From contig OZ287759.1 of assembly GCA_965649765.1 (NCBI GenBank), forward strand, positions 48,980,001 through 49,044,000: a stretch of 64,000 nt of DNA, written 5' to 3'. Both the position numbers and the translations under genes were made by a program. How positions within the stretch are numbered: the stretch's first letter is position 1; every line of letters starts with the position of its first letter. The notes below the pieces were generated by a model. It ran no database searches. It was not told the origin of the DNA and was given only the letters and a program-made list of their open reading frames with translations. The stretch is from Bispira polyomma (Eukaryota). Positions 1 through 8,499 of the stretch are shown here, piece by piece.

Positions 1-51
1 AAATTCCTATGATGTCAAGTTTGGTGACAGAAGCTAACAAAAGCATAAATC

Positions 52-1324
52 TTGGGAGAAACTACAGTATGCAAGTTACACCCGGGAAGAAAAGAATCAA
101 AAATAAGAAAAGCGTTGTCTTCTCCAGTTTTAAGCCCAGATATCCACAAAATGGACAGTATGCTTCACTCTATGCAAGATGCCTTTGCAAAAACAACAGA
201 TACCATAATAAACACATTTCAAAAGGACTTCCAGAATGCAATATCATCTTTAACAGAAGAGTTTAGAAGTGAAATGCAGCATTTAAAAGCAAACACTTTT
301 GAAAGGGTGGACCAGTTGGAAAAGACTATTACAGAAATGTCTCGTGTTATAACAGATCAACAGAAAGACATGGCCAGTATGCAAGAAGAAAATAAATATT
401 GGAAAGTAAAATCCAAGATCTGGGAAGGCAGGATTACATGAAATGAAAAGGAGCTAGCCAATGTTCAGGAAGATATGTTACAGCTCACAACAAGACAAGC
501 GAGGGAAAACTTGATATTTTATAATATTGAAGAAACCAATAGTGAAACTCCAGATCAAGCTAGAGAAACACTTCATGGAAAAGGAGATGAAAATTAGTGA
601 AAGAGATATGAACTTGATTAAATTGGATAGAGCTCACAAAACAGGAAAGCGCAATGCTTGGAGACATAGACCAATAGTTGCCAGGTTTTTAACAACAGAA
701 AGCAAAACTATTATCCTAAAACATGCCAAAAACATAGACAATACTAGACAGGAAAAGAAGCAAGGTGTTTCAGAACAGTTTCCTTTGGAATTGGTAGAGA
801 GGAGAGCACAATTAAGACCACAGTACTGACAAGCTATAAGAAATCAAAAAGACGTGAAATGTGCATTGGATCAACTGATTATAAATGGAAGAGCTCTTGA
901 AGTTCCAAAATACAAAATTAAAAACATTAATTATTGTGCAGAAGACAATGCCCTACAAATGCAACCCATTCAGGCTCCCTCTAGAGATTATGATGGCAGT
1001 ACTTTCCAGGGACACTGTGTTAAAATACAGAATCAGGATGATGTTATTGCTGGACTGCATGCTGTTTGGATGGACTCCAGAGTGGCTCGAGCAGATCATA
1101 ACATATATGCGTATCGGTAGCAAGCAGCAGATGGTCATATAATCAAACACTACGTGGACGACAGGGAATACGGCAGTGGTAGACGGGTTCTGGATGTGCT
1201 TGAGAAAAAGAACGGGGTTAATCACCTAGTGGTTGTCTCAAGGTGATTTGGAGGGAAACATCTAGGGCGTGCCAGATTTGATCATATAAAAAAAGCTGCA
1301 AGTCTAGTTTTAAATGAACTTTAG
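52..1324 (+). pseudogene. LINE ORF1p: coiled coil + L1-type RRM/CTD (Transposase_22-like) + C-terminal IMPACT/YigZ (UPF0029) domain
   Basis: Heptad-rich N-terminus, then RQARENLIFYNIEE, DRAHKTG..RPIVARF, VSEQFPLELVERRAQL and DQLIING (L1 ORF1 motifs). The same frame continues as GSTFQGH...ARADHNIYAYR*QAADGHIIKHYVDDREYGSGRRVLDVL...NHLVVVSR*FGGKHLGRARFDHIKKAA. Stops at 439, 827, 1118 and 1244, and one frameshift near 570. Confidence 0.85.
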
Positions 1325-1660
1325 TGTGCTGTTTGGGACAGGTAACTTATGTTTGATAATATTAAAGAGTAATAAAAGCATTTTGCGGGTATATTGTGGA
1401 GGAACTTTTAAAATGCAGGTATTTGGCAATAAAGACATTAATTTTGTTATTGATAAATATTTTGCAGAACTATTTTGGATTATAATTTCTTTTTAACTGT
1501 TTTGTAATGAATACATATATGTTGTAGGAACTTTTTTAACATTAGAGAATGAATATAGCAGAACTCAATTGAAAACTGTGAGAAAACTTTTTATACTTTA
1601 TTATGAATATATTTTTTTCTTTTTTTTTTATCTTCAAAAGAATGTGTGTGTATATATATA

Positions 1661-3486
1661 TGTTACAGTAAATATGTGAAATCAGTAAATACGCGTATTT
1701 ACTGAAAATTCAGTAAATACGTGTATTTACTGATTTGGTCAGTAAATACGCGTAATCTCTAAAAATTTCAGTAAATACGCGTACTTACTGGTTTTGGGCC
1801 TGCATTATTTCACAAGTTTACTGGTGGTCATTTCACTAAACATGTGTAATGTGAAAATTTCACTCAAGGGTTTTATTGATATTTAAAAGATAAATATCAG
1901 TGTTTGGTGAATTCATCAGTCTTTCTCATGCATATAATATACATGTAGTATTATTTGGTGTTTTGTGTTGAAAGTTATTTAAGAATCTGGGTTTAGTTAG
2001 GTCACTTTAAAGAATGCTACATCACATGTATTTTGTATTCATATTATTGTCCATTTACACAAGTGTGGTCAAAATATTGGTTTACCCATAGTATATACAA
2101 ATTAAACACTCTAATTTGGTTTACATTTAAAATTGAATAATTATAAAACTGTGAAAATAAAATATAATTTTAAATTACTTTTTTTTTAAATAAAGACTAA
2201 AGGATATTAGTTTGGTTTACATTTAAAATTGAATAATTATAAAACTGTGAAAATAAAATATAATTTTAAATTACTTTTTTTTAAATAAAGACTAAAGGAT
2301 ATAAGGTACTAGTTTGTAAAACTTTCTTTTGATATTATTATAACCAGTTAACTGTGGCTTCTACAGCATCCAAATATCATCCAAGACTCAATTACATGTC
2401 TGTACAGGCCACACTGGCTTTAAAGGTAATTTGATAAATAGATGAAATGAACCCTTTACAAACCCTTCTTTTGATGTACCTAAAACTGTAAAATGTGGTT
2501 TCTGTGTAAGGTAAATCTTAAAGACTCACAATTGCCTATGTTGCATGCTGGTCATCCAATTATATGTGATACTTGTGGCTTCTTAACATTAAATACAATT
2601 ACAGGTAAGTTGAGGTGTGGCTTCTTAGTTTGTGAAATCCATTGGGCCAGATTGAGAAGGTTCAAAATAATCACCCATTGAATTTAATGTTAGCCATTAA
2701 TTGTAATTATCACATACTGTTGTACATAAATAAAGACTGCTGCCTGCTATCAATTCATTTAAGATTTGTACATGTGCAAAATAGCTGATTTAGTTAAACA
2801 TAGATTTAAGCAAGATTTATACACTACATTTTAGCAAACTAAAAAATTGTTTATGTAAAAAGATTAATATTTTTACATAAGTAAAGAGATAAAAAATGCT
2901 GACCAAAAAAAGAGCAGATATATTTACTTACTATTACCAACCACTTATAAATGTACATATTTTCTGTAATAATGTAATTAATTAATTGGTGTCATTTACT
3001 AGATAAAATATACCACATGACATGTAATATATGAGAAAATGTCATTTATATGAGCAAATCTATTTCAAAAGTCATTTTTAGGTGTAAATATATATTTTGA
3101 AGACTACTTGCAACATATTGGTGTAATAATTGAATGATATGTAGAACATACACTTAGGACAGAGAACATAGTATATATGTACATGTATATATAATGTGTC
3201 CAAATAAATTGACCTAAATATAGATGGATTCTTTAATAACTTGTAAAATCACCACTACCACGTAATTATACATCATATGGATGAAAAAGACTTAATGTGG
3301 CTAGTTAATCATCACTTAAAGAATAATAAGACAATTCAGTAAATACGTGAACTTACTGGGCCCAAAAACCAGTAAGTACGCGTACTTACTGAAATTTTTA
3401 GGGATTGATTGGGTCAGTAAATACACGTATTTACTGAAATTTCAGTAAGTACGCGTATTTACAGATTTCACATATTTACTGTAACA
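1661..3486. mobile_element. Non-autonomous DNA transposon (TGT...ACA termini, ~140-bp composite TIRs) inserted in a (TA)n tract
   Basis: Left end TGTTACAGTAAATATGTGAAATC; right end GATTTCACATATTTACTGTAACA. TIRs are built from the palindrome CAGTAAATACGCGTATTTACTG. TATATATA flanks both sides. No coding capacity. Confidence 0.9.
2115..2302. repeat. Near-perfect ~93-bp tandem duplication inside the TIR element
   Basis: TTTGGTTTACATTTAAAATTG...ACTAAAGGATAT occurs at 2115-2207 and 2211-2302; the copies differ by one T in a T-run. Confidence 0.95.
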
Positions 3487-3891
3487 TATATATAATTATC
3501 TTCAAAAGGATATGCGTATTCTTTTATAGTTAAAATCAAAATCGCTTATTATTAAGTTACAGAACAGGACAAACAACTAAAATGATAATGAAAATGCATC
3601 TTTGGAAATGTTTTGAAGGGATTAATTTAATGTTTGGTAATTTAAATCAATTAATTTTATGTTCGGTATTTTACACTCTTAATATAGAGAGATAAAGAGA
3701 CATTTGAAGAGGGTTGCTCTGCCAACCAATCCTGTGTAAACTCTGTTGTGTGTGTTTTTTGTCATATCCAGTCCTCAGTTATTGTGGTGTTGGCTGGTAG
3801 TTAGTGTGTAACCTGTTTTGTGTTTCTGTCAGTTTATTGTGAAACCTGTGTTTAAGTGTTTGTGTTGTTTATTGTTATGTCATAACCAGTT

Positions 3892-4410
3892 ATGTTAGAT
3901 GAAATGTCGGCAAAGCATACTACAGTAGGTAAACTATCATTGCTTAGAGCAAATGTTAGGGGTATTATTAACTTTATATTTACTTATATTAAACAATTAG
4001 TATATTTACTTATATTAAACAAGAAAATTATGATGTTGCTTTTTTACAAGAGACATACTGTACAATGGAACATGAACAACTTTGGCAAAAAGAGTGGGGA
4101 GGGATTTTAATTAGTGCAAATGGGACAAACCACAGTAAAGGTGTTATGATTCTTTTAAAAGACACTCTTCATTATAACGTATTAAATAAGACAATAGACA
4201 ACCTGGGACGATTTATTATAATTCAAGTACATATTGAGGGAAAGACATTTGTTTTAATAAATATTTATGCTCCTAACACTGATGTTGAACAAATAAAATA
4301 TTATGAAGATTTATCGCATGTTATAGAACATGAAAACATAAATGATAATATAATTATTGGAGGGGATTGAAATTTAGTTCAGAATTTAAATTTTGATGAA
4401 AAGGTTGGAA
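3892..4410 (+). pseudogene. LINE ORF2 apurinic-like endonuclease, N-terminal part
   Basis: LSLLRANVRGI, KEWGG..SANGTNHSKGVMILL, GRFIII, LINIYAPN, IIIGGD*N: canonical APE motifs of L1/Tx1. Confidence 0.9.
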
Positions 4411-4633
4411 TTTTTTTTTTTTATCACGCTTCTTTATTACACAAAGTATAGAAGATAACAAACACAAGTTGACAAGTTACTTCAACGTACAACAGATAAA
4501 TACATAGAATTGTTGAATATAAAATAATCTCAATTTCAACCACTGTACATCATTGGGATTTACATTCTGAAGCTTGTGAAATCCTTGCCCATTTTGCAGT
4601 GATATAGTTCTAGAATTAAATAGGATGTCATAT

Positions 4634-4793
4634 ATAGTGGAACCTGGTGAATCTGAAGGGACCATAAAAATGCCAAACTCTGCTCAACAGGGTCAATTTT
4701 AATTATAAATATAGCAACGGGACACTTTAAAATAACTTCTACTTAACAAGTAATTTCACTTATCAAAATTCTACTTAAATGGGTTTGACTGTA
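4634..4793. mobile_element. Tc1/mariner-pogo-like MITE remnant within the transduced segment
   Basis: TA(T)AGTGGAACCT ... GGGTTTGACTG-TA degenerate TIRs with TA flanks. Confidence 0.45.
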
Positions 4794-5170
4794 TATACCA
4801 TTTTTTATTATAGTTAGTATGACAAAGTTCTTTCGTTGCTCTGTTAAAAAACCCGGTTTTATTGCTGTTATTTAATTCATGTTATAATGCATTGCACCTC
4901 TGCTAATAATAATCATGATAAAGAAAGTATTACACTATTTCAAGAAACAGATGCCCATTGTCTACTGTCTATTAACTTGACCAAAAGATTCCTGTGATAT
5001 TAAAAAATTCCTTGATCTTTGAGCATACACGACCATTAATATTAAGTAGGGAATCTTATTTAAAATCTCAAAATAAACGTCTACTATTTGTAATCACAGT
5101 CTAGCCTACGCGACATTACACACAATATAGAAGATGCCAATGGATAAATGTTGATTATCTAACAACACCG

Positions 5171-5171
5171 T

Positions 5172-5206
<35 letters not shown>

Positions 5207-5242
5207 GTTAAAATAGTCTTTTTTTTTTTTTTTTTTTTTTTT
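5171..5242. repeat. (TA)n tract and 24-nt T-run (internal poly(A) of the minus-strand LINE)
   Basis: Read directly from the sequence. Confidence 0.9.
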
Positions 5243-5477
5243 AAAATTTTTCGCATTGATACACAGAACTTCACGCATACATACACAGAACATTCGCACA
5301 ACATAAAATATACATACACAAATACAAATGAATGTACACACACAGAACAATGAAGATAAAAAAAAGAAAACAAAATGGAAGTCCTTTGGTGTTACTTTGT
5401 AACATATGTTTCAAACAAATGGTAAAAATTTAAAAAACACCATGGTTTTGCAAGGAAAGCTGATAAAAAGGCCAAAA

Positions 5478-6955
5478 CTAAACCTCCAACAGATCCACTA
5501 AGGGACTCCACTTTTTAATAAAAACATCTTCTGTTTTGTTATATTGAATTATTATATTCCACTCTACCTTATAAATGTCTCTAAATTTGGCTAAAGCCCC
5601 ACCGACACTAAGATTTTGACCACAACATTTTGTTACATATATATATAATTTTGCTAACATTAACAGATGATTTATAAGCCTTTCATTATGTGGCATCGGA
5701 GCACCGAGTAAAATAGATTTGATATTCAGTACCTCTTGTAAATTGATGTATTGTTCCAAACATTTTGCCAAATCTTTCCAAAACCGATTGACCACTTAGC
5801 ACTCCCAGAACAGATGTTCTAGTGTTTCAGTTGCATTTTTACAAAAATAGCATTTGTCTTCTTTTATTTGGCAAACATTTAGAAATTTATTGGTGGTTAA
5901 AATTCGTTGCAGAATTTTGTACTGAAAACTCTTAGTCTTACTATCAATTGTAGACCGAAAGTTCAAGAGATAGTATTCTGTCATATCGTCTTTGGTAATT
6001 TGAGCTTTTAAGTTTTCAGACCATTTATTTATATGGTTTCTCTTTACATCTAATGAGTTTATTAGTTTCTGGTAAGTTTCCTTGCAGACTTTTGACATGA
6101 CCAGTAGATCCCTTAAAACTGGTTGAAAGACTTGACCTTCACTTAATTTAGCCTTGTGTTCAAGCAGTAATGTCCTCCATAAGCATGGGATCGAATATTT
6201 AAGTGAGTAGAAGTCAACAAAGTTTATATTTACTTTATATAAATTTACAAAGACTTCATAACCCATAAAAACTCCAGATCTGTCTAAAAGGTCATTTACG
6301 TAAAGAACACCCTTCTGCTGGAGCTCATCCCTCCTGCACAAAATGTTGCTATTTTTAAAAAGTAAGAGTTCCAAATAGGGTATGTTCTTATATTAATCTC
6401 ATCCACAAAATTTTCTTTATAGACGGTCCAAGAGTTCAAAACATCTTTCCAAAAGAGATTGGATACCATGTTGTAGAGAAGTCTTAATGAGCAGACATCC
6501 AATAACCATATATCTCTTTTATTAGGTGTTACATTTGTTTCAAAGATGTATTGCCAATCACCATCTGTTTTTACCAAATTTTGAATCCATGTCAATTTTA
6601 ATGCTAAATTCAAAAACCTAAGATTTGTCAACTTTAGTCCTCCATCGGGTATGTCTTTTTCAAGCTGGGACAGCTTAATTCTAGGTTTTTTGTCATCCCA
6701 GAGGAACTTTCGAAACATTTTGTGAATGTTGTTAAAAAATTCTGAAGTGGGTGAAGGTAAAACTTTCATAATATATATCAGTTTAGGTACAGCTAAAGTC
6801 TTTAGTATTGTTACTTTACCAATCAGGGAAATTTTTCGCTTTTTGTATGCCAGCAAAGTATTCTCTATTGCTACAAGTTTTGAGTTGTAGTTCTGATCCA
6901 TCATTACTGTTAGGTCAGTGTCAAAATTAATGCTAAGTAGTGTAAATGAGTTGGA
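5478..6955 (-). pseudogene. L1/Tx1 ORF2 C-terminal half (post-RT region + CCHC zinc finger)
   Basis: KRKISLIGKVTILKTLAVPKLIY, FRKFLW, DGGLKL, PIWN, FQYKILQRILTTN, CYFCKNATETLEHLFWEC, INHLLMLAKLYIY. Only one frameshift (~6370) and one stop (5796). Confidence 0.9.
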
Positions 6956-6966
6956 GTTGGAATTTT

Positions 6967-7358
6967 ATCAAGTAAAAGATCCTCCAAATCAGTACAAAAT
7001 ATGATAAACAAGGTAGAACTTGTAGATATTTGGAGACTTCAAAACCCAACAACAAAAAGATACACATTGCGACGAAAAAACCACAAATACATTGTAGATT
7101 AGGTTATTGGATGATATCCTATAACTTAATAGATTGGGTCACACATACAAATATTTGAACTTCATTTCAGAGAAGGAAATTTTATTTGGAATACTCGAAA
7201 GTGATCATAAAAATAATATTGTGAATCAAATGAATACAATTATACTTTATGCTAAATATTACATCTGGAAGTCAAAACTAGCAAAAAAACATCCAACCAT
7301 CGAAGAATTTAAAAAAACTATGCAATGTTCAGTTGTATATAATAATATTGTTATGTAA
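6967..7358 (+). pseudogene. Continuation of the host LINE endonuclease, fused to the extreme ORF2 C-terminus
   Basis: MINKVELVDIWRLQNPTTKRYT...HCRLGYWMIS (APE C-terminus), immediately followed by EKEILFGI...NTIILYAKYYIWKSK. Confidence 0.8.
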
Positions 7359-8499
7359 TAACATTACTTTTATAGGTAAATATATTTTTCAATAGCTGGG
7401 TGTGACAATGTTTGTCCTGTGAAAATTGTTCGCTGTCTTGTGCTGTAAGTGTCCTGTGGAGTCTTTGTGTCCTTTTGTATTAAAAATGTAAATCCTGTGG
7501 AGTCTTGTGTCCCTTTATCCTTTTGTATTAAAAATCTAATAACTATAGGTCTATTACTTTTGTATTTGTTAAATAAAACATGTATTAGTACATTGTAATT
7601 TGAAGCATTAAAAGATTTACACAGAAAAAAAATTAATGACAATGAGAAAGGTAAAACAGAAAGGACAGTAGTGCAATCTGAATTATCAGGCAAGCACAGT
7701 AAAGTAGAACAGTTTAAATTCATTGATGATTGTGGTCTTGATATTTATATCAGTAGTAGAATTGTAGATAATAGACACGTATACTATGGAGCCGACAAAA
7801 TAGACTCAAAGTTTACAGGAATTTATATGGAAATGTCAGAAAAGGAGAGCCTGATATTACAGGATGCTTGTTATAATGCACAGGACATATGGCCACTTAT
7901 GTACTATATGTCTACAGGGGTCAAGGTCATCAAACATAGACCTGACTGTAAAGGAAAAATGAAAAAAGGGAACAAACCTACGATTGGAAAAACACAATAC
8001 TATAAAAATATCATAGATAAGATAATACAAACACAGGTCATTGAAAAGACAGAAAACAATAAAAAAAACAAAAAAAAACAAGAACAAACAAAACAAAAAC
8101 AAAAGATAATACAGACAAATAAAAACATACAAACGGACAAAAAATAAATTTTAGAACCTACACACATAGTAAAGAAAAAACACACAAAAGCGAACACAGA
8201 TATACCACCAAACTTAAGTGATAACACATCAGCAGTAATCACTTATACAATATGAGAAGAATGACATAGTCGGCAAAGACAATAAAACATAAGGACAAAA
8301 GTACAAAAACAAGTACAGACAGGCGATGACAGAAAATATGTGTTTATAACTCTAGACGATATGCAGTTCACATTTATAGGATCCCGTAAGGAAGTAGTAG
8401 ACATTTACATAATATAAGTATTATATATATAATTTAAAATATTATAAAAACTGACTATAAGTAACTGACATAATTAGAAAGACAAATAAGGCCAACTAT

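Follow-up and report, generated by a model that had tools for sequence, protein, structure and literature searches.

A stretch of 64,000 nucleotides of the Bispira polyomma genome (NCBI GenBank assembly GCA_965649765.1, contig OZ287759.1, positions 48,980,001 to 49,044,000 of the forward strand), called the window here, opens inside the first open reading frame (ORF1) of a long interspersed nuclear element (LINE) whose protein ends in a UPF0029 domain, the 'ancient' domain of IMPACT and Yih1. An earlier note, made from the sequence alone, had described at 527–1324 a frame broken by three stops that runs from L1-type ORF1 motifs directly into an IMPACT/YigZ-like domain. The frame is present, with exactly three in-frame stops (827–829, 1118–1120 and 1244–1246), and the motifs that the note named are seen in its translation. 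As the extent of ORF1, 527–1324 was right for the frame but missed the upstream start, since the window opens at codon 59; comparison with other copies places the 5' end of the LINE about 433 nt upstream of the window start. Alignment to an open copy (L002:1597-3102:-; 502 aa, uninterrupted) revealed a further ORF1 stop at 439–441, which brings the in-frame stops of the window copy to four, and two frameshifting deletions, of 2 nt after position 94 and of 8 nt after position 571. Contigs of independent sequencing runs, whose library type is not recorded, also show the 8-nt difference, and none of the runs recorded as RNA covers this stretch. The parts of ORF1 in the window are as follows.

1–1324, plus strand: decayed LINE ORF1, codon 59 onwards, stop codon included; in DNA 96% identical to the open 502-aa copy.
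175–498, plus strand: coiled-coil region of the ORF1 protein (ORF1p), residues 118–225 of the open copy; predicted by AlphaFold2 (AF2) as a single helix, with a predicted local distance difference test score (pLDDT) >90 from about residue 140.
499–745, plus strand: RNA-recognition motif (RRM) domain of the L1 ORF1p type; Foldseek matches to 2yko, 2ykp and 2w7a, profile matches to 2ykp, 2ldy and 2w7a at E 7e-7 to 2.5e-5.
746–901, plus strand: C-terminal domain (CTD) of L1-type ORF1p, from the AF2 model, Foldseek and a profile match to the RRM-CTD structure 2ldy.
902–982, plus strand: linker from the CTD to UPF0029, with a short helix; AF2 model mapped onto the window.
983–1321, plus strand: UPF0029/IMPACT 'ancient' domain, the last 113 codons; broken by the stops at 1118–1120 and 1244–1246.
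1322–1324, plus strand: ORF1 stop codon.

The stop-broken ORF1 of the window was searched as the pieces between its stops, together with naturally open copies. Three of the pieces match the Pfam family UPF0029 (Impact_N, PF01205; curated cut-off, 27 bits) in collinear order, at profile positions 2–40 (20.1 bits), 47–83 (24.6 bits) and 85–107 (15.7 bits), and the locus read through its stops reaches 82.7 bits in a genome-wide Pfam scan, in agreement with the domain assignment of the earlier note. In the open copy, residues 394–498 match with 88.2 bits (E 4e-25). Pfam search of this 502-aa ORF1 gave UPF0029 only: the RWD domain is absent, as the note had stated, and neither a second, C-terminal domain of the YigZ type nor any other Pfam domain was found, ORF1 stopping four residues past the match.

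By sequence, the best solved relative of the open copy is yeast Yih1 (6bqi, E 2.6e-13), and a family profile built from the alignment A1 matches Yih1 at E 8e-30, TTHA1053 at 1e-7 and Escherichia coli YigZ at 5e-3 in the PDB. An AF2 model of the domain alone (alignment A2) has a pLDDT of 97.5. Compared with 48,161 PDB representatives, the predicted structure has the fold of the N-terminal domain of YigZ, with Z scores of 17.7 for 2cve (root-mean-square deviation, rmsd, of 1.4 Å over 109 residues), 16.5 for 1vi7 and 10.6 for 6bqi (Yih1), and of at most 5.8 for all other representatives. The weak neighbours, at Z of about 4–6, are dominated by domain IV of EF-G/TetM, RNase PH/exosome/PNPase, ribosomal small-subunit proteins (uS9/uS5-like), MutL and GHMP kinases, and include the endoribonuclease YicC; this weak tail fits the 'ribosomal protein S5 domain 2-like' fold class, to which the N-terminal domain of YigZ presumably belongs. 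The signature motifs SxFQ, HNxYAYR, DDGE and RWxGG..LG..RF are kept. Across 65 LINE-borne and canonical domains, F13, H44, A48, D64, D65, E67, R92, G100 and R103 (domain numbering) are invariant or nearly so, and the cluster of invariant residues in the open copy consists of F397, H428, D448, D449, E451, R476, G484 and R487.

The part of ORF1p that precedes this domain is built like the ORF1p of L1. In the AF2 model of the open copy (alignment A1, with 67 relatives), pLDDT exceeds 90 for residues 140–502, and a disordered N-terminus of about 117 residues is followed by a helix (118–225), an RRM-like domain (229–306), a CTD (317–361), the linker and UPF0029 (390–501). In the PDB, Foldseek found significant similarity only to Yih1, the human L1 ORF1p trimer (2yko/2ykp), 2ldy, 2w7a, 2cve and 1vi7. 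The alignment to 2yko/2ykp covers 190 columns with a template-modelling score (TMt) of about 0.6, and that to the RRM structure 2w7a has a TMt of 0.69; the coil aligns to the coil end of 2ykp/2yko, and the alignment to 2ldy and 2ykp runs through the residues equivalent to 317–361. The A1 profile recovers L1 ORF1p by sequence also (2ykp, E 7e-7; 2ldy, 4e-6; 2w7a, 2.5e-5). A relative about 35% identical to the open copy (P0171) passes the threshold of the Pfam family Transposase_22 (28.2 against a cut-off of 22.4) and scores 85.7 bits on UPF0029. The L1-type core proposed in the earlier note is therefore upheld by the profile match to human L1 ORF1p, by fold and by a relative above the Pfam threshold. 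Human and mouse LINE-1 ORF1p (type II; 2ykp, 2yko, 2ldy and 2w7a) has the same order of coiled coil, RRM and CTD, and LINE-1 likewise carries ORF1 upstream of an ORF2 with apurinic/apyrimidinic endonuclease (APE), reverse transcriptase (RT) and zinc finger in a poly(A)-tailed element. In contrast to LINE-1, the family in the window adds the 113-residue UPF0029 domain past the CTD, the disordered N-terminus and a spacer of 0.7–1 kb between the ORFs, and sequence identity to LINE-1 ORF1p is only about 20%.

A DNA search of the organism's own 1.035 Gb genome with window positions 100–1400 recovered at least nine near-full copies of the same family (family A), with 90–95% identity and on different chromosomes. 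The genome-wide scan with Pfam UPF0029 gave 427 candidates, of which 150 were scored, all of them above 60 bits; the domain is free of stops in 111 of the 150 and closes an open frame of 400–532 aa in about 30. Thirty fetched loci fall into at least five families with domain identities of 40–63%, and all five are collinear, with coil, RRM, CTD, linker and UPF0029 followed by a spacer and then by an ORF that starts with an L1-type APE. Several 513-aa frames of one family have identical domains, which suggests recent activity of that family.

The architecture is not confined to this genome. An exhaustive search of 1.84 billion public proteins, each the representative of a 50%-identity cluster, found 100 proteins at E≤1e-30 and 1288 at E≤1e-10, and most of the top matches cover the ORF1 core and the UPF0029 domain together. 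The same gene order exists on a 2.3 Mb contig of another assembly, where a 36%-identical homologue (L063) is followed by APE, RVT_1 and zf-RVT genes. The nearest Atlas clusters with recorded taxa are eukaryotic, Mollusca being the commonest. The fusion is thus found far beyond one locus, in at least nine family copies, at least five families and more than 100 public clusters, with an APE(-RT) ORF2 downstream wherever this was examined. The earlier note had also taken the domain for cargo of the element rather than for the host IMPACT gene, and this stands: the ORF1 lacks RWD, an APE ORF2 is linked to it wherever examined, and 427 candidate loci are not what a single-copy host gene would give. 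A separate observation concerns a 569-aa public metagenome/assembly protein (P0123), in which two full UPF0029 domains and one partial domain stand in tandem (envelopes 188–243, 290–405 and 450–565); this array may have arisen by tandem duplication of the module or by the merging of gene calls.

In copies with downstream sequence, ORF2 lies about 680 nt past ORF1 and matches Exo_endo_phos, RVT_1 (128 bits) and zf-RVT. Its best PDB match is human L1 ORF2p, with 188 bits for the RT part compared with 54 for R2, and the APEs of families B and E are nearest to the L1 endonuclease. Full-length copies share a common 5' end within unrelated flanks, end in AATAAA and poly(A), and are about 6.2 kb long overall. 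The LINE probably belongs to the Tx1 branch of the L1 superfamily, because surveys of bivalve LINEs list Tx1 and not L1 proper (PMC10294476); the large bivalve survey was built on RT domains only (PMC10294476). The spacer between the ORFs is unusually long (about 0.7–1 kb) in all five families and lacks a long ORF; that of family A contains a TA/TG microsatellite.

Between families, the proportion of nonsynonymous differences (pN) is 0.19–0.38 in UPF0029, 0.27–0.46 in RRM+CTD, 0.34–0.64 in the linker and 0.37–0.57 in the coil. The value for UPF0029 is below those of RRM+CTD, linker and coil in all 10 family pairs, the corresponding synonymous proportion (pS) being saturated at 0.81–0.90. The UPF0029 domain is the most constrained part of ORF1p between families, and the domain does not evolve neutrally among the elements, a point on which the earlier note had made its proposal depend. 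Within families, some pairs give ratios of nonsynonymous to synonymous rates (dN/dS) of 0.4–1.3 on fewer than 15 changes, too few differences to measure selection. Based on architecture and selection together, we regard UPF0029 as a module integral to ORF1p and under selection in a large LINE lineage, with a probability of roughly 85%.

The module most likely derives from a eukaryotic gene. It is 42–47% identical to canonical RWD-bearing IMPACTs, and the family profile gives 107 bits for the domain against Yih1, compared with 34 and 19 bits against the two bacterial structures; judged by these scores, the resemblance of the domain to eukaryotic IMPACT far exceeds that to bacterial YigZ. With YigZ and TTHA1053 (1vi7 and 2cve), the LINE-borne domain shares a near-identical N-terminal domain fold (Z 16.5–17.7, rmsd 1.4–1.6 Å), whereas sequence similarity is much weaker than to Yih1, and the second, C-terminal domain of YigZ is missing in ORF1. 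With IMPACT/Yih1 (RWD plus ancient domain; 6bqi) it shares a homologous ancient domain and all the invariant motifs, but the window family has no RWD, and with it no known GCN1-binding determinant, and its domain, free of introns and present in many copies, sits within a transposon protein. In a domain tree of 94 sequences (unrooted, 114 columns, without bacterial sequences), a single clan (SH-aLRT 97) unites the four IMPACTs that bear RWD and sets them apart from the 90 LINE-borne domains, and the five families of the window's genome form one well-supported subgroup. One capture from an IMPACT-type gene of a eukaryote, with RWD left behind, is the most likely origin. Bacterial YigZ sequences were sought with the domain alone to serve as an outgroup, and only eukaryote-like fragments matched.

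Reviews up to 2026 describe the function of the ancient domain itself as unknown, and Yih1 and IMPACT bind ribosomes and actin (PMC4503747, PMC7140605, PMC13094546). If the LINE protein behaves as L1 ORF1p does, it would trimerise through its coil and coat its own RNA through RRM and CTD, and the ribonucleoprotein (RNP) would then display three UPF0029 domains per trimer. The conserved face of UPF0029 may bind the same partner as in IMPACT and YigZ, the likeliest one being a component of the translating ribosome, and such binding would keep newly made ORF1p by its own mRNA (cis-preference) or would aid translation of ORF2 over the 0.7–1 kb spacer. Docking of ORF1p or its RNP to a conserved partner in the translation apparatus is the functional reading that we favour, tentatively and with low confidence. 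It is doubtful in its fuller form, in which the captured domain would be a dock for a ribosome or translation factor that tethers nascent ORF1p trimers to the element mRNA, for cis-preference or ORF2 translation, or would blunt the GCN2 response.

Several points weigh against our interpretation, from the ORF1 assignment to the mechanism. Neither the window piece 527–826 nor the whole open ORF1 matches Transposase_22 in Pfam; because the open copy is under that threshold, the assignment rests on profile, fold and the relative P0171, and on this comparison of sequences and models type II (L1-like) holds for a protein that is too diverged for Pfam. ORF2 is broken in eight of eight family-A copies that were fetched with downstream sequence, which leaves present activity of this family in doubt. 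A single capture is consistent with an unrooted tree that lacks bacterial sequences, and is not proven by it. The host's own IMPACT gene was not located; scans of the genome for UPF0029 were swamped by LINE copies. The best candidate for an RWD exon of that gene is at C4:58680646-58680834 (34% identity to a canonical IMPACT RWD). As to the mechanism, which we infer, the region of Yih1/IMPACT sufficient for ribosome binding overlaps the linker (PMC4503747, PMC7140605, PMC13094546) and is not pinned to the ancient domain, and the fold relatives at Z of about 5 are weak and may reflect only a shared fold arrangement.

The module could instead be catalytic or bind a small ligand, for instance with RNA ends, nucleotides or a modified base as its target, and would then not serve in docking. 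The near-invariant His, Asp-Asp-x-Glu and Arg kept in LINE-borne and canonical domains alike agree with this, as do RNase PH/exosome/PNPase, YicC and GHMP kinases among the weak fold neighbours (Z 4–6) and the clustering of the invariant motifs on one face that the Yih1 literature describes (PMC4503747). However, matches at Z of about 5 may mean a common fold only, and no activity is reported for UPF0029 proteins in the Yih1/IMPACT literature (PMC4503747, PMC7140605, PMC13094546); we consider a catalytic or ligand-binding role unlikely. The position of the domain directly after the RNA-binding RRM-CTD, and a fold class that is common to RNA-binding and ribosomal proteins, would also suit an additional nucleic-acid-binding surface, the first option of the earlier note, that raises the affinity of ORF1p for LINE RNA or target DNA. 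This is distinctly unlikely: the domain carries almost no net charge (a median of +1 among 157 LINE-borne domains, 0 for the window's family) and resembles canonical IMPACT in this, whereas RRM (+3) and CTD (+5) are basic, so that a generic polyanion-binding addition is disfavoured, and conservation sits in the family-wide motif cluster, not in new basic patches. A role in GCN1/GCN2 signalling, for example by binding in trans to the RWD of host IMPACT or of GCN2 and so tuning eIF2alpha phosphorylation while the RNP forms, would accord with the 'closed' form of Yih1, in which the ancient domain contacts the protein's own RWD (PMC13094546), and with the mapping of GCN1 competition to RWD (PMC7140605). 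Yet because ORF1p has no RWD, the element cannot act on GCN1 by competition as IMPACT does, and we hold this improbable.

A neutral passenger, dispensable to the element and hitch-hiking in one successful LINE lineage, would be in keeping with the within-family dN/dS values given above, but all signature motifs are retained over the five families and over more than 100 clusters at 50% identity, and the lower pN of UPF0029 than of RRM+CTD in every family pair, at saturated synonymous sites, makes it very improbable. It is scarcely credible that the fusion is a chance IMPACT retrocopy in one ORF1, a domesticated host gene family or an assembly artefact. One bivalve protein, P0186 of Tegillarca granosa, bears the annotation of a normal host protein, but the same junction exists on many chromosomes with different flanks, along with a common 5' end, poly(A) tails and an APE-RT ORF2, and the same order is found in another assembly. 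Insertion at a single locus was rejected outright, given at least nine family copies and 427 UPF0029 candidates in the genome. In P0186 itself (KUTeg_009388), deposited as an 'Impact N-terminal domain-containing' protein of the host, UPF0029 is joined to a coiled coil and an RRM like that of L1 ORF1, so this protein is probably the product of a LINE ORF1 that was taken for a host gene.

Past ORF1, the layout of the element in the window was mapped against two fuller copies, and is as follows.

1325–1649, plus strand: first part of the inter-ORF spacer, about 680 nt long in uninterrupted copies.
1650–3495, no strand: nested high-copy non-coding insert, foreign to the LINE and missing from other copies of the family.
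3496–4414, plus strand: remainder of the spacer, then the first part of ORF2 (ATG at 3892), with the N-terminal part of the APE endonuclease.
4415–6957, no strand: second foreign insert, inside ORF2, with RT-C-terminal ORFs of another LINE on the minus strand.
6958–7169, plus strand: next 213 nt of ORF2, then an internal deletion of about 2.85 kb (in copy L027, position 4669 jumps to 7521).
7167–7632, plus strand: 3' end of ORF2, 3' untranslated region and a short A-run; other copies have AATAAA and a poly(A) of about 20 A or more.

The downstream APE ORF2 of the earlier note does exist, as part of this same element, but with its start 2.6 kb further on, at 3892, behind the insert with terminal inverted repeats (TIRs). 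The deletion of about 2.85 kb takes out the RT domain. The poly(A)-tailed L1-superfamily LINE, about 6.2 kb long, is thus present in the window as a dead and rearranged copy, damaged by four stops and two frameshifting deletions, by two nested insertions and by the loss of RT. The insert at 1650–3495 (1.85 kb), whose ends of about 150–170 nt match each other in inverted orientation and of which the genome has 2304 candidate copies, looks like a non-autonomous TIR DNA transposon; it holds a tandem array of a 29-nt palindromic unit (1682–1790) and a 96-nt duplication (2115–2302). In the insert at 4415–6957, the RT-C-terminal-like ORFs of another LINE lie at 5478–6904 on the minus strand. Two loci 22 Mb apart (C8:48885767-48891809 and C8:26391642-26397680) each carry a family copy broken after the CTD by another retroelement, with near-identical spacing, which suggests a segmental duplication.

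LINE ORF1 proteins reportedly carry CCHC zinc knuckles, PHD and esterase domains as accessory domains, as Khazina and Weichenrieder (in 2009) and Metcalfe and Casane (in 2014) are said to have described. The present case resembles these in the modular gain of a host-derived domain by ORF1, and we know of no report of an ORF1 accessory domain of the UPF0029/IMPACT type. Full-text literature gave nothing relevant that links UPF0029, PF01205, YigZ or the IMPACT domain to retrotransposons, ORF1 or LINEs. The LINE found here is an L1-type LINE with an ORF1 accessory domain that was not found described in the literature.

ORF1s of this kind are entering databases under the name of host 'Impact N-terminal domain-containing' proteins and swamp searches of these genomes for the true IMPACT gene, which calls for caution in annotation. 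In these elements UPF0029 is more constrained than the RRM-CTD, which L1 retrotransposition is known to need. The ancient domain spans bacteria to humans, and the LINEs offer a natural handle on its function and on the interplay between LINE RNPs and translation, being a natural system in which the domain lacks its RWD partner, is fused to what would be, by homology to L1, an RNA chaperone, and exists in hundreds of selected variants. If the docking or the GCN2 reading is true, these LINEs would reveal the long-sought function of UPF0029.

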